From contig OZ037772.1 in assembly GCA_964035545.1 (NCBI GenBank), forward strand, positions 9,727,150 to 9,791,149: DNA of 64,000 nt, in the 5' to 3' direction. Of this stretch, positions 4,157 through 40,186 are shown piece by piece. The notes under the pieces are model-generated. The model did not search any database. It worked only from the letters and a program-made list of their open reading frames with translations, and had not been told where the DNA came from. Position 1 is the first letter of the stretch, and each line of letters opens with the position of its first letter. Both the position numbers and the translations under genes were made by a program. The DNA is from Bugula neritina. Lineage: Eukaryota; Animalia; Bryozoa.

Positions 4157-4237
<81 letters not shown>

Positions 4238-10984: not shown

Positions 10985-13900
10985 TTACAAATGATCGGCT
11001 GAAGATCTCTTTGAAGATTTCTTCTTTGATAACTTCTTACGTGCTTTTTTTCCATTATCTGCTGCAACATCATTGGCTATATTTTCCGTTATATTTTCAA
11101 GAGGTTTGTCTGAGGCGTTTGTTGAAAGAGCTTTAGCGAGGCCCTTTAGAAGCATCTCCGACATTGTTTCCAAGTCGGTCTTTGAAAGAGTTGCGCTTGG
11201 TTTTTGACTTTGAGAAATCTCAAGTAGCCTTCTCTCAAGACTTTGTGAGAAGTTCACAGAATTTTTAGACATATTTTCATGAATGCTTTCAATCCTGCCT
11301 TTCAATGCTTTATCGGATAGTTTTTTTGACCCATTCTTTGACTTTTTTTTAGTTTTAATTGCTGGAAAACTTTTCGGAGTACTTTCAGAATGTTTCACCA
11401 CTGAACCTGTGGCAGATCTTTCCGTAAGAGAAGGTTTATGAGTATTTGTAGACGTTTTAGTTAAACTTTTAAAATCATTTTCAGATAAGGTTTTTGAATA
11501 AGTTTTTGCTGATTTTGTAAAAGTACCATCAGCAGACTTCATTGGGCCATCCCTGGAGGTACTATCATCGGAGCTTTTTTGACTGCCGGCTACTTTTGTT
11601 GAGTCTTCTACAGCAAAACTTATTTGGTTGTGACTTTGAAGAAATTCCGGTAGTTTTCTTCCAAAGATGGTTGATGCATCTTCTAAATTATCAACAAAAC
11701 TCATTCGAGCTGCCACTGTTACTTTACTCGAACCTGATGCCAGCTTTGTAGCGTGTTCTTGAGTTCGATTCATGCTATTTGATGGCAAACTTTCACCAAT
11801 TTTCTCTTTCACAATTTTCACAGTTTCTTTTTCTGAACTTTTAGCCGCAACATTAGGTTTACTGTTCAGTTTGATTGAATTAGTAGAAGGCCTTCTTGAG
11901 CTGTTTCTGGAAACAACTTTCTTGCGGGTTCTTAGTTGAATGTTGACCGGCTTTTCCGTAACTTTAGATTTGGATTCGCTTTTGAGTTTCGACTTGCTCA
12001 CAGTTTTTATTACAGTTTTTTCTTCTTTTCTAAAATAAATAATATATAAATGCGTGAAAATGACCTAAACAATTACAATGAACAGAATAATTGGTATATT
12101 TATGATCAAACAAATGTCTAGAGATCTAGGGATTAAAGTATTTGCTTAGTAAACACAAGGTCATGGGTTCAAACTCTGACCAAAGCCATTGATGATGTTA
12201 AAAAAAGCATTCAGTCATAAATGCTCGGTGCCCTATCTGATTAAGTCCTTGGCCTAATTTAAAAAGAAACCATTCCATCAGGGATCTCTCACGCAGGGAT
12301 GGCAAACATAAACTTGCTTATGCATAATATATACATAGGTAGACATGACATAACAAGTTTTTGCTGGTGCACAAGCATGCAACTAACACGTACTTCACTC
12401 CTGCAACTCGTTTTCACACCAGCGGCCATTTACTGTAAGAGTGATGGAAAAAGTTGAACAAAACTTTGAAATTTTTATTTAACTTGAGGTCAAAGTTCAT
12501 AAAAAATAGTTATCTCCTACATATCAAGTCGACAAGCATCTGAATAATATAGTAGTAAAGGGGGTTAGTTTGATTCAATAATAAACAATTGGCCACGTCG
12601 TAGATACATCCTTGAAATATAGCCTAAGCACTTAATAAATGTATTAAATACTGTGGCTGGTAATCACAAGCCCTGAAGACTGTATACAGTTTTTGGGAAT
12701 ATAACTATATAGTACCAGCTGAACGCACTTACTCTTCCTTTTTCTTCCTTCTCCGTCTTATAAAGCGACTATAAAGTGTATAAGCCCTGGAATATAGAAT
12801 ACAAGAGAATTAGACAGATATATTTATATATTTGCATTGCAGTATGTTATGCCAATACCTATGTTTTAGATTCTAAAGCTACATTCAGTCTAATGGGATA
12901 GTTTGCTATATATTAGTTTGAAATATAAATTACTTCAACTATATAATTATCCATCATTATATGAATGAAGTTCTTTTTTGATACTGCAGCTTTCTAATTG
13001 GTCAAGACCTCAATAACTTAGTCTTTGCTAAATTTTCTTTTTATAAGCTTTGTGTAGCTTTTAATTACAACGTTACATAATATTATTATATATAAACACA
13101 CAATATTATAATATACATAAACACATAGTATAATATACACAAACAAACATAATATGATATAATATACTTTGTAGTTCCTGAGTCTGTATCCAAGGCATCA
13201 AACTTCTCAAGTAACTTTTCAATACCAAAACAACTACAATGAAGAGACAAGGAATAAATATTAAAGGTGTTCCTATGATAACCTGACAGACTGAATGCCA
13301 ACTAATTTTTGAAAATTGGAGTCTAGCTCATTTTATTTTGTAATATGCTCTATTTACGTGCATCTATTTATTGCTTAATACATTGATGCAATTATATTAT
13401 ATATCACATTATATTATCATAATATTATATTATATTATATATTACCTTATATATAGAAATAAATGTGTAGATGTTGTATAGTAATATAATGAAATTTTGC
13501 ATATAAATTTTATCTCTTATACTAAAAATAAATTTATGTATACATAGATACAAGATTTCATAAATAATATAAAATTTTAACGAAACAATGTAGCAATATT
13601 TAAAAACAGCACAATTTATAAATATATAGGATATACAACAATACTGCAGTATGTTACTGCTTATAAATTTCTGGTCGGTGCTATACACACACACTTGCAC
13701 ACGCATGAGCACACACACACATAATAAAACAGAAATATATATATATATATATATATAAAAAACATTTTTATATAAAAATAAAACATTTTATTGTGATTAG
13801 AATATAGAGAGATATCATAACACAAATGGTATAAACCTCTAAACACAGCTTAATAGTATATGACTAACATAGTTGTATTATTTCAAACAAGTAAAATATT

Positions 13901-15740
13901 ACGGGAAAATATTATTTACTTGTAAGTTATTACATACTAGAATAAAGCAACTGTGAGAGATCCCAAAATAAGAACCACTCCGCCTCCTGTCATTCCACCC
14001 ACAAACTTCTTCTGTTGCTTGAATCCTATAACAAAGTATAGCCTTAAGTTTTTAGAATTGTTAGCATAAATTGGAGTGAGGGATTTTGAAACCCTACATC
14101 ATGCAAGAAAATCATCAGACAAATTATGGTCTATGTAACAGCTTTTTAATAATTTAATTTCCAAATGATAATTTATGATGAACAGTAATGGAGAACATTG
14201 TTACAGATTTTATGTCTTTTGGCTATATTTAGATTTATAGTTACTATGCTCTTATTTTTAATAGAGATTTATAAGTTTCAATTCTTATGTCCTAATATAA
14301 TATTGTATTTGTTTTTGACTATAACTGGAATTAGTCACTATCCAATATACGGACAGCAGCTTCTCAAAGATTCTATAAGCAACATAAAGAAGAGAAAGTT
14401 TAAATTTATATAAACTTCACTTCCTAATCATATATCGTAGTAAAAAGCAACCACCCTTGTAACATAACATTGAATTTATATTGTGAATGGCATAAATGAA
14501 ATTTAAAACTATCTTGTTACATAAAGGTGGTAGACCAGGGTTGTCCAACCTTTGCTGATCGAGGGGCACTGAAATGAAATATACTCCATGTTGGGGGGGG
14601 GTCACATTATAAACTTTAGGTTGAGCTGGGAGCCCCAGCATCAGTATCTTTCAAAGGACTTTTTTCACAATGCTCATAATTTATTACAGTATGAAGTCCC
14701 ATAGTAGTTACTGTAGCCTGCATGCTTTTTGCATGTATATATTATGTAGATATGACATTAAAAAGTTTTTTCTGACTCTAATTTATACATGTCAACAAAA
14801 TAAGCTTATTTCTTATGCTGTTGAAAGCCACATATATAATTTAGGCTAAAATTCACATCCATACGCTTTGCAGAAGGCCGAAGTTATTATCTTTGCTTGA
14901 CAGCATTTTTTCATTTAATTTTAAACACAAAATTACTGTAAAGTAGTTTGCTGATCTTACTGTCACTGATAGTGAAAGGGTTGCTGGGTTTACTCAGTTC
15001 ATTATCGGATACTGAGTAGACGTTGGCAATAAAGTCCCCCTCGACTGGTGGAATGGTGTAGGTAAGTTTAGTCTTCTTCTGGTTGTAGTGTATGAAGTAA
15101 GTATACGGGCATGTGCTGAAGTTGTCAGGCTTACACAACGTTAACAAGAACCTGTCCAATTTCTAAAAAATTGTTTGGTTTTTATTTAGAAATCTGTTAT
15201 AATCTATGAAAATGCACTTAGAGGCTTTCATGATTTTATAAAATACCATCAATTAGTTGTTCTACCGTATGCTTCAAAGTAACTTAAGTTAGCCATGTTG
15301 TTTCACCCTTTATTCTGTGTTAATTATAATGTGATTCCTAAAGCTAAATGCTTCACATCATATATATGAAATTAAATCAGGTAGGATAAGATTATACTAA
15401 TTATGCTAATTATATTAGGCATTGAATTAAATAGAATAAGCGATGCCAGTGATACTAAATAATGGTTATGCTAAAACTAAAGAAACAATGACATGAGACT
15501 CACTCCAGCACGTCTGATTTGCCAAATAAACGTGGTTTTGCCTGTGAGTAGGAGTTGTACCTCCAGATTTGTCGGTGGTATGGGTCCTGAAAAATCAAAG
15601 TAGATATATATAGTTAGATGTTGAATAATATATATATAAGCAATCATAGTGGTTAATTTATCTGACGAGTGCACATCGTTCTTGTGTACGAAACTACTAG
15701 TAATAAATGCCATTATATTAATCAAATCTCATTTTATTTC

Positions 15741-15797
<57 letters not shown>

Positions 15798-18700
15798 AAT
15801 ATGCTCATACATGCATGTACATATAATCCATACAGATACGTACGCGTAGTGTATTCTCTGGTTATGACAGGAAGAAAGGTGCGTTTCGAGTTTAAACTAG
15901 CCCAGACTGTATAGTTATTGGCAATTCCGTAGTTTAAACCGGTCCATGTAAAAGGCTTAATGCTCCCTTCTTTGACCTATATATAGATACACACTGCATT
16001 TTATTGTTGGATTTTTGAAATCTTCACTCACTCACACACGCACGCACACATGCACGCACATACGCACATGCACAAGCACACGTGCACACACAAGCACACA
16101 CAAGCGCACACATACACACACGTGCACACATACAAGCACGAACACACGCACACAAGCACGCACAAACACACACATAATGACATTTTTGCTTCACCCAACT
16201 AGTTTCAAGAAGGAAAGCCAGGAAAATTGCTAAAGGAATAGCTGAATTTTTAGGAAATTATATAAATGTGATGCTCTTACAATTTTGACAACTCTCTCTG
16301 GGTTATTCGAACAGATGGCTTGTAAATAGTCAAATTTGTTGTACCTCTCATTGTAGAACTCAAAGCTCATTATCACACTGTTTCCATCAGATTCGAAAAT
16401 TAAATTTTTTGGTGGCTGAGGAGCTAAAACAGTTTGATTTAAATTGTTGCTTATAGATAAAGCATTTTGAAAGCAAAAAGTTGATAAATTTCACTGCACC
16501 TAAAAGTCTTAAATCATCCTAATTTTAACAGCTTGAATGAGTCCTTTACAAAAATACTAATTAAAAAAAATAAAATGATGCATGAGTCATAAAATAATTT
16601 GAATCTCTTTCAAAAATTTAAGTTTATTTTTGCTAAATTATAATTGTAAGTTTTGTTTGTTTGTTTGTTTGTTTTGTTTGTTTGTTTGGTTTATTTCATC
16701 AAAGGTATTTAATAACACAAGGACATTAGAAAATGCCAAGGAGGCGATGATGAGGCCCATTGCGCTATAGCCTAGCTAGTCATGCGCGGGCCAACACGAG
16801 CTGACAGCGACTCTATCCAGAAAAATACAAAAAAAATACAACTATTCTAACAGATAAAGCCTCAACTTCCTCCCAAATTCATTAGGGTTGCTGATTGACC
16901 GTAAAGGGATTGGCAGTTCATTCCATAGTGCCACCTCCTGATAACAGTTTCTCCTGTGACCTGCTGCTGTTTGAGAGTGAGGAAGGGGGAGATTTATGAA
17001 TGATTGACGTGTATTGATAGAGTGAGTGGGAAAAAAATTGTCAGAGTAGAAAAAAGAATGAGCTTTCTTTAACACTTTAAAACGGTAAATCTGGTATATT
17101 GAGAGAACTTTATGCTTAGTAAATAGAGGCGCTGATGGATGGTCAAACGGTTTTTTGTTCATGATACGCATTACCTTTTTTTGAAAAATAAAAATCTTGT
17201 TTAGATGGGTATTAGCTGCATTTCCCCAGGCCTCTGCACAATAATTTAACTTGGAATTGATGAAAGAATTATATATCAAAAGTAAAATTTTTTGAGGGAG
17301 ATATTCAGAACATCGGTATATTAATCCACTAAGTGGTCGTAATTTTGTAAGTAGGTTTGAGATGTGCAAGCTCCAATTTAAATTTTTATCTATTTGTACA
17401 CCTAGAAAAGTTATGCTGTTAGAGTAATTTATAGGTCTTTTATTTAATAATATACAGTTTTCTAGAATTTGAAAAGGATTTTGGTAGTTTTTTAAAACAA
17501 TATAGTTGCATTTTTCATAGTTTATAGTGAGTTTGTTTTTATTGCACCAAATTGACAGAGAGTTTAGATCTTGATTTATAGCTTCCAAATGGGAGTTCAA
17601 ATCTTTTGATTCAAAAAATAAATTAGTGTCGTCGGCATGCTTCATTGTTAAAGTTATTTACTGGTTTATATTTTGCCAATTTGTTGTTTCCTTATCTGGA
17701 CAGTCTGAAACTTTTAAGCAAAATACAAATATTTGTGTTACCTAAATTTGAATTTAACATTCGCAGTTAGCCAGTTACACAAAAATATATGAAATATAAA
17801 TAGAAATTGCTGATCACACATAGTCCGAAGTGCATTAATCATAATTTTATTCCAGTATGATGACATAATCTTTCGCTAAAATGTTTGAGCTTGTATTTTC
17901 ATGCATTGTATTTGATTTCGATATGTAGAACAGAGTTAACTTTTTTTAGTACAATAAATGTTCTAATAACTGAATTTATGAAAATATAATATTACTTTTA
18001 ATTAAACTTAATTTAATTTTTTGTCTATCAGGTAAGTGATTAAAGGTTTAAAATTATTTCCAACATAATTCCTTGTTTTTAGCGTTTGAGTGACAGGCTA
18101 GAGTTCATTATAAGATAGCCAGAGAACCTAATCAAATTTACTGTGATTGTTTATACAACTGACAACTGATATAATCACCTGCAAAAATTTGTTTTTCCTG
18201 TGACTTTGCCTTCTTATAATAGGCATCTATAGAGGACACAACTCTTAGAAAGACTGTGTAATATTTTCCAAACTCCAGGCCAGTTACATTAAACTAAAAA
18301 AGCAAAATATATGTAGACTACAGGTGGCGCTCTAGCCCATTATAGACCACGGCTGCTCCCTTTGACTATGTTTGAAACACGAATTAAATAAATTCTGCAG
18401 AAAATATCAAATTACTTTGAGGTCTGAAATTTTTGCTCCTCTTAGTATTGTTAATTTTCCATTTACAGACATCTCTACATAAGAGAACGAGTCTGTTTCA
18501 GCTGTCTTTTCAGCAATTGCTGTTAACTTCATTGCATCGTTTACACCAACTTCGTAATGTAAGGATGAAAGAATCAGTGGAACTGGCTCTATAAAACAAT
18601 TATTTTTACATTATTTTATATTTATTTTGTTAATTACTTCAATAATATGTTTACTTCATATAGTTTGGACTTGAAAAGTAGAAATTTGCAGCTGTATAAT

Positions 18701-21700
18701 ACAGTTTGGTAGCATTTAATTGATTTTTGTTAAATACCTACACTATAATGTGAAAATCAAATATTCAAACTAGTTTCCTATACTATAATATTTGGTCAAT
18801 TGCAGCTTATCAAAATCTTTAAACATACTTTGGTCAAATAAAATAACCTTTTCAGCATTTAATGAATAATCTAACACCATCATAAAATGCACTGATAAAA
18901 CATCATGTCTTAAATAATATATATAGCTAAAACTAATGACATTTCCTGCAAAAATAACTGTGAAGAGAATGTTTGTTTTTTTCAAAAGTTATTTGGAAAA
19001 AGTCAAAACAACTTTTTCAGGTTTATACATGTGATTTTGAATTCTACAAACCAAATTTAGACAATTAATTTTTGCTCAAGCGGAACAAATTTTAACTTAA
19101 TTTACCAAGCATTTTGTTAGTTATGTGCAAACGCTGCTATAAGTTAAATTTTGTAAATGATGTTCATCAGTGCATGAAGATGAAATAAACTTAATTTAAT
19201 AAGTAGAAATGCATGCTCACGTATCACTAAATAGTCTTCCAAGTTGTAGCTTTTGCCGTGGGTTTTGGAAAAGAGAGTGCAAGTTATTATCTCCCCATTC
19301 TCAAATTTCGCCTCACTTCTGTCGACTAGAAATTTCTCCTCACGTTGCAAACCTGGAAGTGCACAAATGACTATTAGATGAAATTTAATTACCTACAAAA
19401 TTTTCGATAAATTTAATTGAATATAATATTTTTTTCTTGAGCTATGCAGTTCTGATGCGCCATTAATCATTATGCTGTTTTAAACTAGCTGTAAAACTGC
19501 AAAGAATAGCAAAAAGCAGCAGACAATTTAGATAAAATTTCATTTATGTTTGAAAAATAATTTTGCTTCCACTGGGATTCAAACCCAAGACCTCAGGCTT
19601 GCAAGCAAGTGTGCTAACTACTACGCCACGGAGACCACTGGATAAACTCATTGCTACAAGGTTTTAGTTGCTTCTAAGTCTAGTGCGTAAATTATTATGT
19701 AAACAAAAACTTAACCTGGAAGTGGAATAACTTTCATTTCAGCGAGTGCGATTTTGCCAGCTCCAGTTTTGCAAATTCGAATAAGGTTAAGCTTCCTTAT
19801 GTTGTTTGGCCATACTGAGTACATCTTCTCCAGTTCCTGCACAAAATTCTCTTGATTAGCGATTTCAGACGCACTTCCGCAAGATGGCGTGCCGGAGCTA
19901 ACCCCGTAGATCTTTACGTCTTCCATCCAGTCAGCTAAAAACAATTATTAATATGAATTCACTGGCATACTTAAGAGCCAAAGTTAACTTGTGTCAAATT
20001 TCTAAAAATAAATCTTTGTGAATATTTACTAAACGCTTCACTGCTCACTCTACTGTGTTTTTGTTTCAATCATTTTTTATATTAAATAATTACTGTATAT
20101 ATCTGTTTTATAATTGGTTTTTTTTGTTAAAAATTGTTCATTAGTTCCATTCTTAGTTATATCTGCATATAATATGTCAATCAACAAAACTAGTTAAAAT
20201 TATTTGTTGTTTCTACAAGTTACACATTTTGCGACATAAATTTCAAAGTGCAAAGGTCAAAAATATACCACATATTTACCAATTGAGTAGTCTCACGGAA
20301 AATAAATATATAAAACAAACAAACATCACTATTTAACAGATTACGTACTACAGCTAATTGAGGAACCGCACTTCTTGTCAAGAAAGTACAGGTAGAGGTG
20401 AGAGATCCATCTGGTGGTTCTCAGGTTTACCTGCCACCATTTCACTCCCTGGTGACTGATTTCAAAGCCATCGGCGGGGTAGCTAGACCCTATCAAACCG
20501 TTTACTGCTTGACTGGTGGGCGTGGCCGGGACTAAAACATCGCATGGCATAATATAGTTTCCCAATGCGATTTCTAATACATCATATTTTTAAAGGGGAA
20601 ATTACTTCTTAGACGGTTAGGATGGAATATCTTTTTATCTGATTGATTGCATGGGAGTTATGTAACTCGCAAGTGCCTGCCTTCTCAAAATTACCATAGT
20701 GCAATTCGAAACTTATTCAAATAATTGAACTTAATATTTTTATTCAAATAAAAATAATACTTATTATTTACTTTAAGAAAATAATTTTCTATTCAATGCC
20801 AATGAAAAAGTATTTTAATAAACCTGTTTTGATAATTAATAGCGTCTGTTGAGGGAGTAATGTTTCAGTATTCAATGTCAACAGTTGTATCGTCAAACTT
20901 ACTATTGAGAGTGCCCGTTCCTGCACTGCTTCCTGTGTTAATAACTGCTAGAGCCAAGTTCTCTTCATCTGTGGTAATAAGAGTTAATTATGTAATTTTT
21001 AACATGAAAGTTGGCAACAAGATATAGAAATGATGTCAAATTGGTTCTCTATCACTTTGTTTCCATTCTTTCGCATTATGAAGTTGTGGTTTCATTCAAT
21101 GTGACTGTTTCCAAATATGGAATGAGAAATCTATTTACATAACGTGCTTGGAAATGTATTGATTGATAATTAATACAAAACTGGGCAAATATAAAGGAAA
21201 AAGGAGGGGATAAAGATAGATGATTCGGTCATAGTTACCCAAAGAATCCCCGAAAAACTTAAATTATACAGTAGTAAACTATTTATGTATATTTTCGCTA
21301 TCATCTGCATAATATTTGAGAATTGCATATTCAACTATTTTTGATTTATAAAATATTTTCTGCTAATGTTAATAAGAGTTTTTAATCAACTCTAAAAGAT
21401 ACTACAGAATTAATTCACAAATTACAGTAGAGTTTCATAAAGATTTGTTTTGAGCTGCACAATCACAGAGTTTAGGTAGGTTGCTAGGCTGATCCCTAAA
21501 GATTTAAACTCCAGCCCACACAACTATTATAAAGCTGTTGAAAAGTTGTTATAAATAATAACTAAGATAAATATATATTATTGCATATTATTATATGTCA
21601 ATTCTGCATGGATAAAATGTGTCAACAACCCTCATGGTGCAGAGTTGGACTTAGACCTAGAACCAACTATATTTTATTATGAAATGCTATGTTTCCTAAA

Positions 21701-26255: not shown

Positions 26256-27174
26256 TTTTTTCCTAGTTGCCCTACATCATGGCTTTTTTGTTTTCTTTTT
26301 ATGAGTGAATTTTTAACTTAAACTAGTTTGTTTGATCGAAATTCATGAGAAAATTTAAATTGTTTTTAGGGACATTGTTGAGCTCAAAGATATGCAGTTT
26401 GACACATCTAAACACGATTGTGATTTGTGTCTACATTGTGTGATGGTGCAAATTGAAATTATCAGTTTGCTGCCATTTTCACAAAAATAGACAGCTGCAG
26501 CTTTTTTAAAAAAATCGCTTTCAAAACAGCTACTATATTGACAGATCGAACTTTAAACTATTTAAAGTAAATCAAAATGTAATGAAATATTCAGTTTCTA
26601 TTAAGAATTAAAGTTTAAATCTATAATTGATCAATAAACTTGCTTTGTATAAAACAGCAAAAAATGCAATAAGATTGTTTGCTTTATTTTTTAAAAAAAA
26701 AACATACTTTAGCATAAAACTTTTTTGAAATAAATTTTTCTAAAGAGATGATTTTTGCTTGCAATGTCTTTAAAATTCTTTTTTGCAAATAGCTAATGCT
26801 ATGAGAACCTAGCTAATATTACTCTAAATAATTTTTAAATATTGCTTTTGAAATTTGAATAAACTTCTAGCAAGCAATTTCCCATTTATCATAATTTTAT
26901 TAAGCAGAAATGAGCTTTTTAAAGCAAAATATTTGTCTTTCACATATTGCAAATAGACAAAGGAATATCAAAATGCAAATTAAACTGGAAATTCAGAATC
27001 TTTTAAAAAATAAACATATAACATAAATAATTAGTGTACGTATAGTTCAATATTCCCTTAAAGTTCAACAATATAAAAAAAATTTTATTCAAAGTCAAAA
27101 CACATTAAATTTTTAATTTTTATTGTTTTCAAAAAATATTGCAACAAAAAAACTCAACTATAGATAAAAATAAT
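26256..27174. promoter_or_regulatory. Probable bidirectional promoter and 5' UTR region shared by genes A and B
   Basis: 919 bp between divergent ATGs (26255 minus, 27175 plus), with no other gene or recognisable repeat between them. Inferred from position only. Confidence 0.55.
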
Positions 27175-30100
27175 ATGAATAATTTTGCCAAAAGAATAGT
27201 TTTGTTAACCGTATTACTCTGGTAAGTAAAAATTTATACCTATATGTTATTTACTTACCAGTAATCTAGCTATTATACATATAACTAATATAATTTTCAA
27301 AGATTGATATACGCTTAATCATAAAGATATTATATATTTTTTTTAATAATGATGTGACTTTACGATGCAATCTGCCATTTATCTACAAAAAACTATTATC
27401 AAAATTCTGCAATAGTTGCAAATAATGGAGAAAAAGGCTTTCATTATTTTTTATTCACTCTAAAAATAAAATATACCTGAATATTTTCTATTTTCATAAC
27501 TCTTCCTGCTTTTATAATTACCGCAATGCACACACATGTTGTGTATTACCATTGTTATAGTTTCTATATCAAAAATACATTTTATATATTACGTTATTTC
27601 TACGATGCTTTTCATGGTAAAAATTAATGGAAATATCAAGGCTATTGCTATAATATAAATTTGTATTAGCTAGTTATATACAATTTTATTAAATACAAAA
27701 TAAAAATAATGATTATACAAATTAATAAAGTATGCAATCGCACTGATTAAAACATGCACTGTATGTATTTAATACATACAAAGCAATTTAGTGTATACAG
27801 TGCTCTGGGCATAGCAATGTATATATTCTACATTGATTTGTTCAAAGCAATTGCACTTTATTCTTTACTGCAACCAAAATAAAAACACTGAAATATATAG
27901 CTGCTAATTTAGCTATATGCATGTGTGTTTCTGCATGCGTGTTTGTGTGAGAGCATGGTGTAGGTGTGTGAGTAGACAATTTCTATGCAAGTAGTATATA
28001 TTGCATATACACAAATAACAACTAGCTTTTGTGCTGGAATATATGATATACATTTATTACGTATATTACACACACATGGGTAGTCTAGAAAGTACATACG
28101 CAGTAAGGCTGAGTGGCGACATTACGTTTGTACGGACTGGTGAAAAAGTTAAAGTAAGCACTCGAGTGTCTGGTAGCCCGTACGAAAGTTGGACAAACCT
28201 CGTAGCAATTTTTACGGCCTGTGGACAACATCGCCCTGTTTGCAGGACAGAAAGAGTTTCACTAAGAAATGATCAAAAACTTGTAAGCAATTTACTAAAT
28301 TTGTTTTCAAAATTTTCAATTTTTCAGATAATAAAAAAGTTTTCTATAACAGCTAGGGCTTGACAGTTGGTCCTGGTTTGCACAATCTGTATTGTATGCT
28401 GTTAATTGTTGATCACATTTTCTAGCAATTGTTTTATTTGTGTACATATATGTAGCATACTTCAAATCATGTATTTTATATGCAATGAAAAGGTTACCTA
28501 TTTATTTATTAGGCTATATGTACATTTTGTTATATACTATAAAAATTTTGGAAATATTATTTTATAGATTTCTGCCACATTTTCATTTCTTTATTATGAT
28601 GAAGAAATTAACTTTAGCACTCAGTTGTATCGAGGCAATCGTGTTATTTCAACAAACTTTATCAACAAGATATTTGGTAAGTGCATGCTTATAACATGAA
28701 ACAATTATTTTGTTTATCTAAAGTGTATAGTTTGAATTAGCATGCATTTAGTTGTAGATGAAGTTATGGTAATGTGCATTTACGTCAATTGCTTATAATT
28801 AAATCTGTTATTATGAGTCAATATTATGTAAAGAAACACTCTAGCCATCCTACATCACGTTCTATTTGCATAAAAAAGAGAAACACAAAATAATGTTATG
28901 TTAAAGTGGTAAACGCGCATAAATCACAAATACTTTATAGATTTCAAATATAAACAAAAATTATTCTCCTATAATGTGCTAGATGTTTGTAGAAAATTGT
29001 AAAATTGGCATTTGTTGTGCTAGTTTTCATAGGTTTACACTACTTTTTGTAACATGAAGCATTAATAATTTATTTTTCTATGCCAGAAAATAGTTTTATC
29101 AATATTCAAGGATAGACTGTTGCAACTATATAGCCACTTTTACTGTATATTAAAATAATGTGTTGATCGATCAAAGTTTAGATTAAGTTATTCTCATTTA
29201 TGAATACAAGATTTGCATCTCATAGTTATAAAACACAAAACTAAAAGCAAAAAAATCCAAAACTCTGAAACCATTTACTTTTACAATTTTGAATTAAAAA
29301 AATTCGCTTTTGCTGTTACATATAATGGAGTAGCTTTAGCAACTATGCTAGCTGAAGCCTTGCTCAAACTGTTGTATACACACATAATCTGAAATGAACT
29401 AACACACACCAGCATATATGCCAACGCATTTACATAGTGTAAGCTTAAAATATATACACACATGCACTAACACACAAAGATGCATAAAAATAAACAAAAA
29501 CAGACACCAACACACAAAAGCAAAACCATTGCACAATAAAATGAAAAAATGAATACACACTTTTGTATTATTTATGCTGAAAAAATGGCAACAAATCTAT
29601 ACACATATCTATAAAATATACATTTGTATTTCTATTCTTTTTATATTAATTATTATATTTTATTATTTGGGAAGCAGCTGTGGTTTAGGGGTTAGAGCGT
29701 TTGTCTAGTAAACACGAAGTCATGGGTTTGAGCCCTGACAAAGGCCATTGGTGATGTTAGGAAGAGCATCCAATCATAATTGCTCCTGTGCCTTATTTAA
29801 ATAAGTCCTTAGCCAGCTTTAAGAAAAACTCTTTCTATCAGGGTTTCTCACAAGGATAGTTACAATAAACTTGCGTGAGTTTTTTTCATTGTATTATATT
29901 ATTTATTGCTCGTTTAACTTGTTTCAGAGATGAATGCTGAAATAAAAGTGATAGTAGAGCACTTGAGAGACAACGTCGGTACACCAGCATATTTAGATAG
30001 GATTAGATTCATTCTGGTGCTACACTCCCGAGCCAAGTACCCCGAAGGTTTTGAGATCAGTTGCCGAAAGTATCAGGGTCTTCTTGACCAGAAGTATTCT

Positions 30101-31819
30101 GTCACTCGGCAGTTTGTCTTTAATAACTGTGAGTATACACCATCTTGTTTTGGCTCAATATCATGCAATATTCTTTTGAGAATTAAATCAATATGTACTA
30201 ACTCATTTACTCGCTCACTCACTTAGTCAATCACTCACTCAATTGCCTCCTTGTTCACTCACTCACTCGCTCAATCGCTCATCACTCATTCACTCACTCA
30301 CTCATGAACAGTAAATGTTGTCATGCTATATTTAGCAATAGTTCATAGATATAGGCCTAAACTCATTTAATTGATTGTATAATTTAATTATGGATCACTG
30401 TTTTTATTACAAAAATAATTATTTGTTATTTAACATTTTGTTAGATAATGACTTGCATCAAAAGAAAAGATATATAGATTTTGCAATATGAAAAATGAAA
30501 ATCATATTTACAGCTGTTGTTTTGATAAATTTGAACAAATTCATCAAATCTTTTGTTGGTTGCTGTGATTTGAAATGCTCATATACATATAAACTTAAAA
30601 GTTGGGTTTTTATTGAATTTGGTAAGAAAAATAAATAAAGAATTTTTGGAACGATATTATAATTTTTAAATAGTCAGAAAATGTGTAAACAAATAATGTT
30701 TCTTGTTTTTCAGCACAGAATAAAGCAATTAACGCGATGGCAAAAACAAATAATGTTCAGATAAATGGAGATCCTGCCAAAGTAGTGGATGACTCATTTG
30801 AGACTTACATTGATCTATACTCTAAAAACAACGGCGCTTGGGTGTCTTTCGATATGCAAAAAGTAACAAAAATTGGAGAGATTGAAATTTACTATGAATG
30901 GTATCACACCAGTAAGAATTTCAGTTCACTTTGTATTAAATGTTTTGCCTAATGTATATTTTTATGTTGAATCAAACTAGTAATTTAAATTATTATGACA
31001 CAATAATATTTAGTTTTTCACAAAATTATTCATACTATTTACATTAAAGAGAGAAAGATTGTTATAGCTATATAGGGTAGTAAAAGTCTATACTATTAAA
31101 GCAGTTTTAGACTAAGGGATTTTTAAATGTATGTATTGGTCAAATTACAAGCATTTTAAAACGTGATTATTATTTATAATAAATTTTTTATAATATTTTT
31201 TATAATATAAAACAATGTCAGCTATACACTTAATAGCTTTATTTTCAAATGGCTAACTTTACTACAACAAAACAACAATTGTTATTTGTCAATTGTATCT
31301 TTCTAATGACCTTCTGCCAATTGAAATTTGTCAGTTGTTTATTGCAAATCTTTATTTATTAATTATCAATTTTAAATTGTCAATATGGTTGCTAGTATAG
31401 ATCTTATCATCATTATAATATATCGATATTACTGATGGCGCAATGTGTTGGTAACAGAATAAGAGGTTGCATTGGGGTGTGGAATTATTTCAGGTGCAAC
31501 AACATGCACGATTCTATCAGCCATACTAGAGCCTCAAGTTAATCCGGCTAAAGACACACCTTGGTGGACAAATAAGGGAGACAAGTTTATACCCCCTACT
31601 AAGACATACTTGATTATAGCGAACAAAGGCCAGTTTCTGGCTCGGTACATTGCTCTGTATATTAGTGCAACGAATACAAAGATGAGACTTTATGAAATCA
31701 AAGTGTTCAGTGAATGTACGTATTATATATATATATATATATATATAATGTATGCTGATTGTCAATCTAGTTGGAGTTCCAGCAAAGTAAAGTGCTCGAT
31801 ATCACGGGTGACAGAGCTA

Positions 31820-31864
<45 letters not shown>

Positions 31865-34284
31865 GTTTTAAAATATTTCTATAATACATGTACTATATTT
31901 TGATATGTAGAAATTGCTGTGCAAACTTTTCGTAAATTACTAGCAGCACAATAAAAATAATTATTGTATGTCTAGAATAAAAAATGTTTTCTTTTTATGC
32001 TTTTCTGGGTTTAAGATCAAAAGAATGTTGGATTTGGAGCTGAAAGTTCTTCTAGTAGTGACGCCGACAAAACAACTGCGAGTAAGTCTTGTGTCGTAGT
32101 TTAAAACTTGTTGTGAATTTGAATCATAAATCTAGACAGAACAGCTACTTGTAAAGTTACAAAAGTGTTTTAAAATATAGCTTTAAAAATTACTTTACAT
32201 AAAGTGTTAACTCATCACAGCTAGGTCAACAAGTTGTGTTAACATCAAAGCTAAATTTGGATCTTTTACAAATAATATGGTAAATTACACAAAGACTTTG
32301 ATGAACATTTAAATTGAAGATGCTATAAATTATTAAATTAATTTGCTCACCATTCTTTGTACTTGATTATATTGTCCTGCTAAACTATAATATTGTATTG
32401 TTATATACTATTATCGTTGCATTATTATAAAACCTGAATACAATTTTGTCTGTTTTATCATAATATCACATTGTTATACTACTAGATGATCATAATGTGA
32501 TATGATTTATTTTTATATTACTATATCTTATCATATTATTGTATTACTGCTTGTATTACTATCCTAATGTACCAATGCAACTATATGTTTACCGTATTAT
32601 CACCGGTCAACTCTGATTAGCTATTTGCATGTACGTGTACTGTATATGCAATATTATTGATTATTATGTATATTCTGATAACACAATGTGTGGTTTTGTA
32701 GCATTCTTTCTAAACACAGAAAATGCATTAAATGGATACGTTGGCAGGAGTCACTATTACGATGGGTTCTTATTGGACAGCCCACAACCAAAATGGTTCA
32801 GAGTGTCCTTGAAGTCACTGACCTGGATTTCTCACATGTATATTTACTTCTTTGATGATAAGTGTGGTGGACCTAGCACTTGCTGTGAGTATTCATGTCT
32901 ATAATGAGAGAATAACTCTTAAATATTAAATTTCTATTTTTAGATCGCAATTGCCTATATCAATTTAAAGAAAAGCAAATGATTATTTTACTACTTCTGA
33001 AGTTCAAGAAAAACTTGCAAAAACGCCTGTGTTCTAGATGAAATATGTAATATAGCAAAGCAAACTTTGTTTTTGTGAAAATTTTGTTTCCTGTCTCAAA
33101 CCAAAATATATAAAAGGCATTTCTGCACAAAAATATATTTCACCGTGTTATTGTTGCTAACTTCAATCAACTAATTTAAGTAAATCATTATTTTTGTTGA
33201 CTAAAATATTTAGCAGGGATTATTTATATAAAACCAGATTTTCTAACAATTTTCAGTATGCAGTTTTGTGTATTGGAATTCCCACCATTTCTAGCTCAGT
33301 GGTTGAATGACGTAACAGTTACAGCTACGGCAGCTACTCCTGCTGTCGTTTCAAGGTGCAGTAGCTCTGACGTCATTGCTCCTAAATCAAACTTTATCAA
33401 AGAAAACTTTGTCAACTCGCATGTATACTCCGTGTGGCCTAACAATATCAAACAATACAGACACATCCAACTTTGCAAATCTGGACCCGGGAAGCTAACA
33501 CTGGCTGAAATGAAGATCTTTGATATTGGTAATAATAAAACATTTCACATTATCTACTTATTTGAAACTCATTGAGTGTGACTTTAGATGTAGACGTAAT
33601 TTCAAACTTTAAACATAAAAACCTTTTTTGTAAAAACTTAGAAATTAATGGCATAACTTATTATTACTATAATAAGTTACACTAGACTACTAGAAAAATA
33701 CGTTAGTATATCAGCAAATCACATAGCAACACATAATTCAAGAAATATAAAATAATATATCATATAATTTACTGTAATGAAACATAATATAATACAGTAT
33801 ATTAAAATGATATAATATACAGTATGTTTTAACATAATACAAAATAACATGATTTTTAATAATTATATTAATTAAACGTAGCATAGTAATAAAGTGTTCC
33901 ATATAATATAATATAATATGACGTGATGAATAACATTATCAACGTATAATTTTCAATATATTTTGAAATTGCAAACTAAACTAAATAAAAGTGCGATGAT
34001 GGTGAAAATACAAAATTGCTATTTCTTTCAGATTTAGACTTAGAGCGCTACGAAATGTTTGCTGTCGACAGAGCTGAAGCAAATTTCTCCAATGGTGAAA
34101 TAATGGCCTGTAATCTTAGATCCAAGACTAAAAACAAAATCTACAAATTGCAGGATTATTTGATAGTTGGTAAATGTAGTGATTCAGTGTTTCAATATTT
34201 TCTTGTGACAAACTATTTTATATTGATTCACAAAAAGTAATTTGAATGTAATCTCTAATGTGTAACAGAACAGCTGAATTATAC

Positions 34285-34350
<66 letters not shown>

Positions 34351-37300
34351 TCTATAATTGAAAAATGAATTAAGAGAACTCAATAATTTGAAAAATAGAG
34401 TATTCATATTGGGTATTGAAACTATATTGGGTATAATAAATTTATTTCCTAATTTAGATGACTACAAATTTGTTTCGCGTTGTTTAAACTACGCTCATCA
34501 TATATGTATGTATGTATATGTAATTTTAATAATTCTTTTGCAATTGTAACTCTCCACAGATCCTGCGCCCTTGAAAATATTGTCATTCTCTTACTGGCAA
34601 GACGAAGACGGCTCTCTACGAATCACGGTGACAGCAAGAAAGCTACAGGAGTCAGACATGTTTTCATATGTTGAAATGGTTATCAACGACAAAGCAACAC
34701 CATTTCGAGGGAGGCAACTGCAAGATCTCAGAGTAGGTGGCTGGTTTATATACACATCGTATAATTATATAGCATATGCATTCTTTGTACTTCAGGTATT
34801 CATAGTCAGGTTGCAGTTCTTAGAATAAGTTATGATTGTATTTAATAATAGATATACAACAAATCTAAATGCCCATTAGCAACAAAAAATTATAAAAAAT
34901 ATTTTCATGCTAATTATAGGTGTTGTGAAATTATAAAAAAGAAAGTAAATAATGTAATATGATGATTAAATTAAATGCGGTGAAATAGTATATTATATCC
35001 AATGATGAACTAGATGTTTAGTTTTATTTTATTTCTTGTATCTTGTAAATTTACTTTCTATAGTTAGGTACATTTTACAGTATCAATATAGTTTGATAAA
35101 ATATTATATATATTTAAGTCAAAAGATTGATAACATACGTAAATAGGTTAGTAACAAATTGATAAGATTCACGTATAGATTAGTGAAGATAAATAAGACA
35201 CATATACAGATAGATTAGTGAAGACAGACGGTAGATATGCGGATGTGACCATATGTCATGTGACTTGTAGCTGAGTGTGACAGGGCTGTCCTATGGTCGA
35301 GAGTATACTGTATTTCTCAGGACTGTCGCACTCGTAGAGTCACAGTATAAGAATGCGGATTCTGAAAAGAGACGATTCATCGCAGGTAGCAAAAATCTTA
35401 AAGCTAAATTCTGATTTGAATATATTTACAGTTTATATAATAAGCTATGTCAATAAACATCTAATCTATTAATCTAGTAATTTTCATTTTCAACATTAAT
35501 ATAGATTTTGATAATAAAATTTGAAATTATATAGCAGTAAAATATTTTAGATTTAAACTTATTTCTCCAGTAGACAAATAGCAAAAACATCAAAGCTAGC
35601 ATAATCATAGTAAATTGGGAAGATAAGTTGTAAAATCTAGAAGTATATTTTATAGAGCATATGTTACAATATCATATAATATAATAAAATATAATATAAT
35701 ATAATGAAATATAATATCATGCAATATAATATATTGCGTTATAATAAAATATAATATGATATGACATATTATAATATAATACAATACAATATAATACAAT
35801 ATAATATTATTTGATATATTAATATAATCCTTCCCTAAAAATTTAGTTTTAATTTCAGGCTACAACAAAACGCAATCATGTTTGTCTATTTTATACATAT
35901 AGAACCTCTACCACCGAAGGAGTTGCTATTTGAGACTTCAGGGACAACTGTGACAATGAGTTTACAGCTACATAACCCGAGATTCAATAACTTTCATCAA
36001 CTCAACATAACTTGTTCGGCGTATCCTGGCACCGTTATTGTTTCTGTAAGATCTAAAAACTATTGCTAAGTGCTCCCATTCTTGATATCTGAAAATTATT
36101 TTAATCTGGTTAAAACCGAAGTTGAACTTTGAGCTGTGAAAGTTAAGAAAAGTTTCAATTTATGCATAGATGAAAAAAGATATCTTGAAGTCATATATTT
36201 GGGAGAACCTTGTTCCAGGCGTTGCACATAACTATACAATTTGGACCATTTTTCATGGCACCCCTTCGTTAAGGTCATCCCTCGTAAGAGAATATGTCAC
36301 CAGTATGTATTATCTTAAAATACTCTTTCGTAAATAAATCAACATAAAACAATGCATTACACTACATTAATTATGTGACTGTTATAGAAACAAGATGCAT
36401 ATACTTTAAAATTATACTATAACATAGGATTTGTTTTATCTAAACACTTGTTGACTCATCTCCAACATATGCAGACGGCATAGATTAAGCGAATGCTTAT
36501 TATACCTAAAGCGCTTTTTGGTAACATTCTTATATTGTGTAATACCTTTTTTGTAAAAACAATCAAATAACTTGTTATACAATGTGCGAATCGAACAATT
36601 TTCTAATGAAAGTATAGTTCAACAGACATTTTCCTGATAAGCATGTGGTTTTTATATTAGGTAAGTTTAGGACACTTTGAGTTCTCAACTAATCATTTAG
36701 AGATGTTGTTTGTAACTGTTTACTTTCTTTTATTGACCTCTAGAGCCAATTGCTCCAACTGATCTACAAGTAAAGTACCTCTACACGGGAAGGACGAGAT
36801 TCATATGGAGAATAAAACCTACGGGAGTAAGTTCTTTAAGGTCAACGTTAAGGCTCTGCATGGTCTCTAAAAAAATTCAAGATTTTAAAGTAAATCAAGT
36901 CCTACTTCATAGGTTAAGCATGAATTGTCGTTGAATATTAAATCTTTTTGCCGTACAACATTGCCGAAAGAAAATTACACAAAAGAAAAACAGTAATTGA
37001 ATAAAGGAAAAATGCAGAAACAAATCATTTTTTGTGATTAGGTTGCTAAGCTGCATCTTTTGTCACCTATTCTCACCTATCTCTGCTTTGTCCTGCTTGG
37101 GTCTCTAAGCTAAATGCAAATACTAAATTCGTGATTTTACCTTATTTATTGTACATGCAGGACAGATAATTAAAACCAAGAATTAAAATTGGTTAAAAAT
37201 CATAAAAATTTAGCAGGTTGCCATATAATTTATAATGAGTACAAATATGTATAAGAACATAGGCTGGGAGAAAACCCTGCAACAATGAAGTGCATTTCAT

Positions 37301-38335
37301 TGTCATATTGGTAACCAAAAATGTGGTTGCGAACCAATATGGTTCCGTCCGCATATCCCAATTTACTAAAAAAATAGGAAAAAATATAGAAAATCAAAAG
37401 ACAAATTACCAAAACTTTAATTATTTAGCTGCATTTGTTATTATTCAATTAGTTTAGGGTAAAAAAATATAATAGCAGTAAACTGTGAAAAATAGCTAGA
37501 AGCTAAAGATATCAATTGTGTATTAAATTAGGTAAACTAAATTAAGGAAAGGGATATGATGTTTATACCACCACGCAAGTTTATATTCGCTATCCCTTCT
37601 GAGAAACCCCTGATGGAAAGGGTTTTTGTTAGAACAGGCTAAGGACTTATTTAGATGAGGCACAGGAGCAGTTATGACTGGATACTCTTCCTAACATCAC
37701 CAATGGTCTTTGTCAGAGTTCAAACCCATGACCTCATGTTTACTAAGCAAATGCTCTAACCCCTAGACCAGGGCTGCTTCCAGTACTGCATAAATTAGTT
37801 TATTGTAGACAACCGTGACTTTGTGTTCACAAAGCAAATGCTTTAACCCCTTGACCACGGCTGCTCCCTATGATGTTTACACTATGTGCAATATAAAACG
37901 TTATTTTTAGAAAATTGACGGTTTTATGATAGAGCTGTGTCTCTCTCAAAACCTGAGTATGTGTCCCCACAGATACTCTACAGAGTATGACCAAGTATCA
38001 TACATAGTGAGGCGCGGCATTCCACCAGTTGACGGAAACTTTACGGTCAAAGTCTACTCCGTCTCTTACAACCAGCTCAGTGATGAAAGCAACACTGTAG
38101 AGATTAGTGGAAGTAAGTATAGAATATACTATAAAATAAATGACTGCAAAATAAGGCTGTATTATATTACAAAGTGTACTAAGATAGGCAATCCTGAAAA
38201 AAGTTATTTCTGCGAAATAGTATTTTAAATAAGTGGCGTAAAATGTTCTAAATTAATGCACTATTTTTTGTAATGAGTTAAATAGGTGCAAGTTATGGGC
38301 CTATATATTTTATTATATCATGCGAAAGTAGGTTG

Positions 38336-38390
<55 letters not shown>

Positions 38391-40186
38391 CTATAAAATA
38401 TAAAAAACAAGTTGTTATAATAAGATAACTTATATTATACCTCAATTTGTGAGAAAATAAATGACTGTTAAATGAGTCTATATTATATGGTAACTTGTGA
38501 GGAGATAATGTAAGTGACTGTATAAAAATAAGTTAAACTATGCTGCAGAATGTAATAAAATACAAGACTATAAACAAGTGTATATTATGTTTCAGGGTAC
38601 CAACAGTACAAGGGATTTGCGGGAGGAATGACAGTGTTTGGAATAACTGTTTGGCTACTTTCACTAGGTGTCATCATTTTCTAGTAGGTGTCATCATATT
38701 CTAGTAGGTGTCACCATTTTCCAGTAGGCGTCAACATCTTCTAGTAGGTGTCATCTTTTTCTAGTAGGTGTCACCATTTTCTAGTAGGTGTCATCATATT
38801 CTAGTAGGTGTCAGCATTTTCTAGTAGGTGTCACTATTTTACATTAGGTGTCACCATTTTCGATTAGAAGTAGCAGGTGCCTGGATGTTGTATCTTGCAT
38901 ATCATATAAAACTTACTATTGTTTATAAAATCATAGCATATATAAGCTTGCCATTGTTTATCAAGTCACATCGAATAGAAATTCACTAGCTTTATATGGA
39001 GTCTCAATCTTTTGAACAGCTTCTGATACAAATTTTGGTCTTAAGCAGACTAAGGACTTTTTTTCTGTTGCAGCAAAATTTTTTTTCAGTAATTTGACTT
39101 CAATACCTTATTTTCAATTGGTGAACCTACAGTAAAACAAATTAATTATGTATGAATATTTATTTATAGAAGCTTTTTTGCATTTTAGTTGCTATGGTAT
39201 CGGGAAGATGTACGAGTTTTACGAAGGAGCAGTTGGAAAACTAAAGTATGTCAATTAAATTTTTATATTTTCAAGTAGATAATACCTTAGAAAGTCCATG
39301 TGCAATACCTTGGAAATTAAATGTGCAAAACGTTGGAACTTTAATAATGATCTCTATTCTTATATGAAAAAATTCTGAATGATAGAAAAATAGTTTGCTT
39401 TGGTGTGAAAAAAATATAAAATTAGAATAACATATCCTTTAAATGCTCCCTCCCACACAAAATCGACATAAGTGTACTTAAAAAAAACTTAAAACATGCA
39501 AATTGATAACCCTAATTACAACAATCAAGCATTAAACATTTCTAAATTGAACTTATAAATGTCTATATAGTAAATGCTAAATTGCACTTAATTTTTTTAT
39601 AAATATATATGATTTTATAAGCATAAACTAAACTTAATTTACTGAATATTAGTATTTTAGTTTGCAAGTTGATTTTGTAAAGTATTATTTTGTTTTACTC
39701 GAATTTAAACCCTTGACCTTCAGCTTGCAAGTGTAGTAATCATTACGCAGCAGGGACTGCTTAGTATAGATTCAACGCTACACATTTTGCTTTTTTTACT
39801 TAGGAAATTTAGCCTTCGAAGTCTTTGTGGCTGCTGTAAAAAAGAAACGAAGACTGTTGAAGTGGTGAAGATTCAACAAATGTAAGTGCATAGTTATAAT
39901 TACATTAGAGAGCAGACAACTCATTGCAACGTTGATATATTTTCATCAGTTGTTTTAAAAACACTTAAAATATAGCTTAGTAATTGCAATATGAATGGCT
40001 ACTAAAATAGACTATATTTAACAATAGAACTAAACTGTAGTTTACAAAATGTATTTGTGTATTTGCAGTCAGATACTGAAGCTAGATACAGGGAATATAT
40101 CAGATTCAAAGGATGAGATGGTGATGAATCAGGGAAAGAGAGTAGGAAAAGTGCCAGCGCACATGAGCAATGGCAATAGATATTGA
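27175..40186 (+). CDS. Gene B: paralog of gene A with the same ectodomain and TM and a short (~80 aa) tail, ~928 aa
   Basis: 20 GT-AG exons: 27175-27221, 28084-28282, 28568-28676, 29928-30128, 30714-30911, 31494-31715, 32016-32081, 32702-32884, 33295-33528, 34032-34169, 34560-34732, 35271-35385, 35903-36045, 36170-36302, 36744-36826, 37911-38112, 38596-38683, 39189-39245, 39804-39881, 40069-40186. Total 2787 nt, open frame. Signal MNNFAKRIVLLTVLLCLESTYA. Motifs shared with A include RPVCR, VTKIGE.E.Y, YSVWPNNI, LAEMK, IPPV.G.F...VYSVS.N and FYC.GI.K. Confidence 0.85.
29669..29880 (+). mobile_element. Same SINE family copy
   Basis: Near-complete match to the 23843 copy. Confidence 0.88.
30203..30304. 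repeat. (ACTC)n microsatellite
   Basis: Direct inspection. Confidence 0.85.
34286..34346. repeat. (TA)n microsatellite (others at ~13735, 15745, 31725, 31825, 38339)
   Basis: Direct inspection. Confidence 0.95.
37570..37869 (-). mobile_element. Same SINE family: one full copy (37570-37781) plus an extra head (37811-37869)
   Basis: Reverse-complement match to the 23843 copy. The second fragment ends GACCACGGCTGCTCCC. Confidence 0.85.
38664..38863 (+). repeat. Minisatellite, 10 x 20 bp (GTAGGTGTCATCATTTTCTA), starting inside the TM exon of gene B
   Basis: Visible 20-nt period. The first unit is coding (LGVIIF). Units 2-9 each begin with GTAGG. Confidence 0.95.

Follow-up and report, generated by a model that had tools for sequence, protein, structure and literature searches.

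A head-to-head pair of paralogous Bugula neritina genes that probably encode membrane proteins with tandem lectin-like modules and an FN3 stalk

Introduction

What kind of protein is encoded by two long genes that lie head to head in the genome of the bryozoan Bugula neritina, and are both copies functional? The genes, here called A and B, lie in a 64,000-nt stretch of DNA (GenBank assembly GCA_964035545.1, contig OZ037772.1, positions 9,727,150 to 9,791,149 of the forward strand), which we call the window and from whose first nucleotide all positions below are counted. The assembly searched comprises 216 Mb in 321 contigs, and the window is ~31% G+C. An initial annotation, made by reading the letters alone, had described A and B as surface receptor paralogues and suggested a role in self/non-self or gamete recognition. 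Having rebuilt the exon chains and compared the two loci with each other, with domain and structure libraries and with a sister lineage, we find support for A and B as old duplicates that are both under purifying selection, and we consider it probable that they encode type I membrane proteins in which tandem lectin-like modules are carried on an FN3 stalk.

Results

Gene A and gene B share an exon-intron structure

The two genes are divergent, with the start codon of A at 26255 on the minus strand and that of B at 27175 on the plus strand.

10985-26255, minus: gene A, start to stop codon, rebuilt exon chain; the stop at 10985 closes the long tail open reading frame (ORF)
27175-40186, plus: gene B, start to provisional stop codon, rebuilt exon chain
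26256-27174, unstranded: spacer of 919 bp between the start codons, putative bidirectional promoter

The gap from ATG to ATG is 919 bp, as the initial annotation had given it. Divergent starts less than 1 kb apart place A and B among bidirectional pairs, the distance being taken here between start codons; partners in such pairs are typically unrelated, whereas A and B are paralogues from an inverted duplication. An inverted-repeat search of the spacer returned AT-rich chance matches only, and none of four RNA-like contig sets placed a contig on it.

When stop-free segments of both loci were compared with blastp, 15 collinear matches were obtained at 32–58% identity (E 1e-6 to 1e-18), and the offsets of AG acceptors and GT donors relative to the alignment were equal in both genes for nearly every pair. 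Exon bounds were set from these anchors, the shared AG/GT offsets and inspection of the junctions, two acceptors needing a closer look. The junctions are canonical in appearance, with a pyrimidine tract ahead of the AG and gtaagt-like donors, and a position weight matrix (PWM) trained on them ranked most real sites within the top few percent of regional AG/GT dinucleotides. Between the fifth and sixth anchors a 66-nt exon pair was found in both genes; its acceptors are weak, and in the A copy (exon 7) an acceptor of PWM 0.2 is combined with a strong donor (9.5). In this way 17 exons were rebuilt per gene, from the signal peptide through the transmembrane exon.

Exons of gene A:
26212-26255, minus: exon 1, 44 nt, signal-peptide-like MQNLITAITVIAIS, ends in phase 2; donor PWM 9.2, joins acceptor 25042 (PWM 6.7)
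24847-25042, minus: exon 2, 196 nt, 33% identical to B exon 2
24084-24192, minus: exon 3, 109 nt
22891-23091, minus: exon 4, 201 nt, conserved Cys162
22090-22284, minus: exon 5, 195 nt, lectin-like module 1, N-terminal half; ESM Atlas 0.94, local hidden Markov model (HMM) in register
21772-21990, minus: exon 6, 219 nt, lectin-like module 1, C-terminal half
20903-20968, minus: exon 7, 66 nt, start of lectin-like module 2, 'ENLALAV', which aligns to the 'NLAL' start of PF22633-type exons
20349-20531, minus: exon 8, 183 nt, lectin-like module 2, 'KWWQVNL'; ESM Atlas PF22633 0.96
19716-19934, minus: exon 9, 219 nt, lectin-like module 2, C-terminal half
19221-19352, minus: exon 10, 132 nt, Cys502; the most conserved exon, 57% identical to B
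18416-18588, minus: exon 11, 173 nt, FN3-like domain 1, first part
18179-18293, minus: exon 12, 115 nt, FN3-like domain 1, second part
16281-16423, minus: exon 13, 143 nt, FN3-like domain 2, first part
15844-15976, minus: exon 14, 133 nt, FN3-like domain 2, second part
15504-15586, minus: exon 15, 83 nt, predicted FN3 domain 3, first part; sister lineage differs at 0 of 27 residues
14961-15162, minus: exon 16, 202 nt, predicted FN3 domain 3, strands C-G; AlphaFold2 (AF2) and PDB fold matches
13938-14025, minus: exon 17, 88 nt, transmembrane segment, ends in phase 2
10985-12029, minus: last exon, ~347 codons plus stop, Ser/Lys-rich cytoplasmic tail

Exons of gene B:
27175-27221, plus: exon 1, 47 nt, signal-peptide-like MNNFAKRIVLLTVLL, ends in phase 2; donor PWM 9.9
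28084-28282, plus: exon 2, 199 nt; alternative acceptor 28093, poor pyrimidine tract
28568-28676, plus: exon 3, 109 nt
29928-30128, plus: exon 4, 201 nt; orthologous fragment P0005 / L036
30714-30911, plus: exon 5, 198 nt, lectin-like module 1, N-terminal half; sister lineage differs at 12 of 61 residues
31494-31715, plus: exon 6, 222 nt, lectin-like module 1, C-terminal half
32016-32081, plus: exon 7, 66 nt; acceptor PWM 4.3, donor 10.4
32702-32884, plus: exon 8, 183 nt, lectin-like module 2, N-terminal half
33295-33528, plus: exon 9, 234 nt, lectin-like module 2, C-terminal half
34038-34169, plus: exon 10, 132 nt
34560-34732, plus: exon 11, 173 nt
35271-35385, plus: exon 12, 115 nt
35903-36045, plus: exon 13, 143 nt
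36170-36302, plus: exon 14, 133 nt
36744-36826, plus: exon 15, 83 nt
37911-38112, plus: exon 16, 202 nt, predicted FN3 domain 3; orthologue P0002 / L003, 4 of 67 residues changed
38596-38683, plus: exon 17, 88 nt, transmembrane segment
39189-39209, plus: exon 18, provisional, 21 nt; best-scoring phase-consistent chain, alternative donor 39245
39804-39881, plus: exon 19, provisional, 78 nt, 'KFSLRSLCGCCKKETKTVEVVKIQQ'; phase-consistent chain
40069-40186, plus: exon 20, provisional, 118 nt with stop; phase-consistent chain

All 16 introns between these 17 exons match in position and phase. The models, transmembrane exon included, are free of stops (833 aa for A, 842 aa for B), and up to the transmembrane exon the proteins are 40.7% identical, with 11 conserved Cys in common. 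Twelve exon pairs are equal in length (109, 201, 66, 183, 132, 173, 115, 143, 133, 83, 202 and 88 nt), and in the remaining five the difference is a multiple of 3 (44/47, 196/199, 195/198, 219/222 and 219/234 nt). The signal-peptide exons both end in phase 2, encode a hydrophobic core and have strong donors (PWM 9.2 and 9.9). DNA similarity between the loci is confined to copies of an interspersed repeat of ~200 nt. Since intron positions and phases match at only 41% protein identity and the introns lack homology, our results support the view that A and B are old duplicates from an inverted tandem duplication, both copies of which were kept.

On most of these points the initial annotation was correct: its intact frames, its introns without visible similarity, its estimate that a third to a half of residues are shared and its old inverted duplication with both copies retained agree with the rebuilt models and with the sister-lineage orthologues and selection described below, and all 11 of its equal exon lengths recur, the 132-nt pair having been missed. 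It had further proposed 20 exons with the same phase throughout. A model of that kind exists for both genes; 17 exons and 16 introns of it hold, and everything beyond the transmembrane exon is provisional. There, dynamic programming on splice-PWM scores gave B a good phase-consistent chain, which includes in exon 19 a 'KKETKTV' similar to the 'KEEKTV' at the start of the A tail. In A the secure part is the long last exon (10985-12029) only; the one or two small exons before it are ambiguous, and a candidate at 12821-12949 sits in a stretch poorly conserved in the sister contig.

A 20-nt unit (TAGGTGTCACCATTTTCTAG) is present in 9.9 tandem copies at 38665-38861. The array begins within the last bases of the transmembrane exon of B, whose splice donor recurs in it.

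Both genes are under purifying selection

Relatives outside the assembly were found in two JGI metagenomes only (3300002729 and 3300003318), whose contig names carry AY690838, the accession of the Bugula neritina mitochondrial genome (PMC2678162). They supplied sister contigs for exons 15–17 (L005) and the tail (L038) of A, and for exons 4–6 (L036), 8–9 (L037) and 16 (L003/L004) of B; metagenome scans gave no sister sequence for the lectin exons of A. Divergence from the assembly is 17–19% in introns, compared with 7.5% in the exons of A and 11.4% in those of B. Across these six contigs the metagenome host and the assembled genome differ by a synonymous divergence (dS) of ~0.4. The two are deeply diverged lineages rather than one population, perhaps cryptic species. 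The sister lineage carries orthologues of both genes, and the duplication is older than the split between the lineages.

Ratios of replacement to silent divergence (dN/dS) were obtained from Nei-Gojobori counts:

A exons 15–17: 122 codons, 1 replacement, dS 0.41, dN/dS 0.018
A tail: 323 codons, dS 0.33, dN/dS 0.10
B exons 5, 6, 8, 9 and 16: 331 codons, 32 replacements, dS 0.41, dN/dS 0.116 (exon 4 dropped, gapped)

On these values both genes are under purifying selection, and hence functional and conserved. A exon 16 has 15 synonymous differences from its sister orthologue and none of its 67 residues is changed, while the A tail is 93% identical, with all indels in frame and its acceptor conserved. 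The value for B exon 5, in lectin-like module 1, is ~0.2.

These numbers bear directly on the earlier suggestion that the pair serves allorecognition or gamete recognition, for which a hypervariable ectodomain would be expected. The layout invites that reading: like Hydractinia Alr1/Alr2 and paired immune receptors, A and B are linked paralogues with related ectodomains and unlike tails, long in A and short in B. The genome also holds at least 150 F-type-lectin-like exon matches, oyster F-lectin repeats serve in gamete recognition, and lectin-like module 1 of B is the least conserved part sampled, with 12 of 61 residues different in the sister lineage. However, dN/dS, which as divergence from a sister lineage is a proxy for polymorphism, is far below 1 wherever sampled, only ~0.2 even in B exon 5, and A exons 15–17 differ at 1 of 122 residues across a dS of 0.41. 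There is also no multigene cluster, as searches of the 216-Mb assembly with three different exons gave two copies, and no more, in each case. Alr proteins and paired immune receptors have Ig-like domains, are highly polymorphic and belong to multigene complexes, whereas A and B combine lectin-like and FN3-like domains, are two genes only and have diverged mostly at silent sites. Given the low dN/dS and the copy number of two, we regard the allorecognition proposal as very improbable; A and B have the look of ordinary paired receptors restricted to a lineage, not that of a hypervariable self/non-self system. An Alr- or Botryllus fuhc-type locus was also considered as an assignment and rejected, with neither diversifying selection (dN/dS as proxy) nor a gene cluster in evidence.

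Two central modules weakly resemble F-type-lectin domains

Sequence searches for domains were run on single-exon pieces of 43–77 aa. In the ESM Atlas, A exon 5 has F5_F8_type_C and F5_F8_type_C_2 neighbours at 0.94 and A exon 8 falls with PF22633 clusters at 0.96 (183–185 shared features); for both exons the ten best named matches all belong to the galactose-binding-like clan. An HMM trained on 28 PF22633-matching exons from the same genome scored A at 12.5 and B at 12.3 bits, compared with a maximum of 6.1 in 1000 shuffles, and aligned both modules in register ('NLAL', 'AvdG', 'WWxVdL'). Across the 216-Mb genome, a profile of A/B exon 8 found A and B as its only significant matches, together with three weak extras, two of which (C4, 20.00 and 20.02 Mb) independently match PF22633.

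At least 150 PF22633-matching exons occur in the genome, in tandem clusters, none of them listed within the window:

C3, 7.6-8.1 Mb
C5, 0.46-0.52 and 1.24-1.33 Mb
C6, 10.7-12.6 Mb
C8, 5.1-5.5, 9.57-9.58 and 10.40-10.43 Mb

Most of these matches span model positions 1–45 only, and the domain is therefore split at a fixed intron in those genes too. A and B share with them the division into half-domain exons and with F-type lectin or NedA-like domains (PF22633, PF00754) the order of motifs, 'NLAL...', 'A(V/L)(N/D)G', 'WWxV(D/N)L', a hydrophobic strand and 'LxExxV'. They differ in that their single exons fall below every Pfam threshold and in that the modules stand within a membrane protein with FN3-like domains. 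Each lectin-like module is split across 2–3 exons, and the Pfam comparison was made exon by exon. The two central modules thus weakly resemble discoidin/F-type-lectin (F5_F8_type_C_2) domains.

The fucose site of F-type lectins consists of a His and two Arg/Lys residues in the motif HX(24)RXDX(4)(R/K). No complete copy of it is present in A or B: module 2 of A keeps the His ('ISHQ') and reads 'YFLDKKCG' where 'NRGDCCGER' is expected, module 2 of B is without the His, and module 1 has neither the His nor the Arg part of the motif. As the fucose-binding residues are mostly replaced, sugar binding is uncertain.

The exons that flank the lectin-like pair, 4 and 10, have one conserved Cys apiece in A and in B, within 'ITC' in exon 4 and within 'GEIITC' or 'GEIMAC' in exon 10.

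The stalk, the membrane segment and the tails

A exon 16 alone, which encodes 67 aa or ~70% of a domain, was modelled by AF2 with a predicted local distance difference test score (pLDDT) of 84.3 and a predicted template modelling score (pTM) of 0.67. In a Foldseek search of the PDB with this model, the best 20 matches were all FN3 domains, as were almost all of the 50 listed, at TM-scores of 0.55–0.80; the top matches (fibcon, fibronectin III-8/10/11/EDB, tenascin and the FN3 of the IL-12 receptor) had probabilities of 0.97–1.00, with E only 0.06–0.3. In the ESM Atlas, fn3 and Ig-like families appeared for exon 16 at only 0.90–0.92, and Pfam fn3 matched no exon. The predicted fold identifies the third stalk unit, and that unit only, as FN3. 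The signal peptide and transmembrane segment were read straight from the sequence. The domain order of the initial annotation is thus largely upheld, with two lectin-like modules from the ESM Atlas and HMM comparisons, one FN3 domain from the predicted fold, and both hydrophobic segments.

The tail of A (347 residues; 18% Ser, 16% Lys) matched no Pfam family at E ≤ 1, and its AF2 model has mostly pLDDT < 50, with helices at tail residues 239–303. These helices (window ~11120-11314, minus strand) have pLDDT 70–85 and are almost invariant in the sister lineage; they may form a docking or coiled-coil element. The provisional exons of B predict a tail of ~70 residues with a juxtamembrane Cys cluster.

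Relation to known receptor families

Tandem discoidin-type pairs occur in neuropilins, in discoidin domain receptors (DDRs) and in factor V/VIII-type proteins, and A and B could belong to a characterised metazoan family of discoidin-domain, neuropilin-like or FN3 adhesion proteins whose orthologues were missed by exon-wise searches. Queries of 43–77 aa are blind below ~35–40% identity in libraries of billions of proteins, which leaves room for this explanation. The neuropilin b1b2 domains, the discoidin (DS) plus DS-like domains of DDR1/2 and the C1C2 domains of MFGE8/EDIL3 resemble A and B in having two adjacent jelly-roll modules of one clan. The tandem-discoidin receptors are type I or secreted proteins in which the pair is the ligand-binding unit, and DDRs have a long disordered cytoplasmic juxtamembrane stretch. 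A and B differ from them in having three FN3-type domains between the lectin-like pair and the membrane, an extra N-terminal region of ~170 residues, and no CUB, MAM, EGF or kinase domain detected by exon-wise Pfam comparison; sequence similarity to these receptors was not detected either.

Other searches also speak against a known family. Pfam gave no CUB, MAM, LamG, EGF or Ig signal on any exon, and no Pfam domain, kinase or otherwise, was found in the A tail, which AF2 models as largely disordered. With the exon-16 profile, HMMER run exhaustively against 1.84 billion representatives returned only genomic ORF fragments of A and B, word-indexed protein searches with A/B exons returned sister-lineage fragments only, and no counterpart was met outside the bugulid lineage in single-exon searches. 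Literature searches yielded no family with this architecture, and we know of none with this domain order. Membership of a characterised family is accordingly unlikely in our judgement, though it is the alternative to which we give the most weight. As a specific candidate, a discoidin domain receptor tyrosine kinase was rejected: there is no kinase in the 347-residue tail of A, and the tail of B is ~70 residues long.

Repeats and flanking elements

Copies of the ~200-nt interspersed repeat, 72–88% identical to each other, lie in introns and near A exon 2 and are extremely abundant in the RNA-like contig sets. Because 'GGGTTCGAACCC'-type motifs occur at its loose ends, the repeat is suggestive of a tRNA-derived short interspersed nuclear element; ARAGORN predicted no tRNA in the window. 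The intron 12 of A, its longest at 1755 nt, contains a retroelement insertion with no counterpart in the matching intron of B. Downstream of A there is a DNA-transposon remnant, and two neighbouring ORFs with weak matches point to unrelated flanking genes.

12125-12317, 23844-24054, 24272-24476, 25078-25278, 29670-29882 and 37572-37781: ~200-nt repeat copies
23237-23435, 23843-23965 and 25168-25241: RNA-like coverage, interspersed repeats
16842-17645, minus: reverse-transcriptase fragment, 267-aa ORF in A intron 12, Pfam RVT_1, E 7.7e-5
7887-8273, plus: DDE_3 transposase ORF, E 4.7e-9
62662-63396, plus: ORF, weak WD40-like / CPSF_A match, E 4e-4
3961-4329, plus: ORF, weak PRT6_C match, E 0.01

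Discussion

The explanation that we favour, and consider probable, is that A and B are two functional genes derived from an ancient inverted tandem duplication and encode type I membrane proteins with tandem lectin-like modules and an FN3 stalk. Several results weigh against it. The lectin assignment rests on weak scores: no Pfam model matched any exon translation at E ≤ 1, the only weak hint among 20 exon or open-segment translations being GBD_Hemicentin (E 0.14); PDB sequence searches with exons 5, 8 and 14 and the exon-16 profile gave chance-level matches or none; and hhalign, with the two lectin-like modules set against each other, reached only P = 0.011. The fucose-binding His/Arg/Arg residues are mostly replaced, A keeping the His only and B none of the three. 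As for the stalk, an HMM of 30 titin-type FN3 domains from the same genome scored A and B no better than shuffles, and hhalign among the three FN3-like units found nothing. Exons 18 and 19 of A were ambiguous in the dynamic programming. Finally, the four RNA-like contig sets, from four studies, cover only intronic repeats and no exon over positions 22300-28299.

This last result would be expected if one or both copies were silent relics, that is, unprocessed pseudogenes that have not yet acquired stops, and the protein libraries searched likewise contained no transcript-derived protein. However, the RNA-like runs are small contig sets in which a gap proves nothing about expression, and the shares of words that they have in common with the region (0.05–0.14) are due to interspersed repeats. 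Moreover, both genes read through more than 830 codons without a stop, in a genome that is AT-rich, exons have diverged much less than introns, and in both genes replacements are 8–50 times rarer than silent changes at a dS of ~0.4. That either gene is a relic is therefore highly improbable.

If A and B are functional membrane proteins of the kind that we favour, each would consist of a signal peptide, an N-terminal beta-rich region, two jelly-roll modules distantly related to discoidin and F-type-lectin (F5_F8_type_C_2) domains, a short and highly conserved connector, three FN3-type domains and a transmembrane helix. The stalk would hold the lectin-like pair off the membrane, where the pair might bind a glycan, a protein or some other ligand outside the cell, and the tail of A would recruit cytoplasmic partners; B could be a partner chain or a separate receptor of other specificity. 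For both, the role that suggests itself is that of a ligand-binding adhesion protein or receptor, and a shared promoter, putatively in the spacer, and an A:B complex are possible. A more elaborate proposal joins these elements: A and B would be the chains of a bugulid-specific, co-regulated heteromeric surface receptor in which exons 4 and 10 form a putative beta-sandwich, clamped by Cys162-Cys502, with two degenerate F-type-lectin modules inserted into it, and which would recognise a specific cue from outside, perhaps a ligand linked to settlement or derived from a symbiont, and would signal by way of the long conserved tail of A. We give this combination only a slim chance of being right as a whole.

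The locus is a clean case of ancient inverted duplication, in which the 16 checked introns have been kept in proteins that are now 41% identical and both copies are strongly constrained. The protein architecture (signal peptide, N-terminal region, two lectin-like modules, three FN3 domains, transmembrane segment) matched no named family here. It comes from a phylum whose genes have hardly been annotated for function, and from a genome with a massive expansion of F-type-lectin-like exons. We regard the result as a well-supported annotation, and the proteins as a variation on a familiar type, rather than as a new principle. If A and B do prove to be ligand-specific receptors, they would open a way into the study of recognition at the cell surface in an animal that is a fouling species and bears symbionts.

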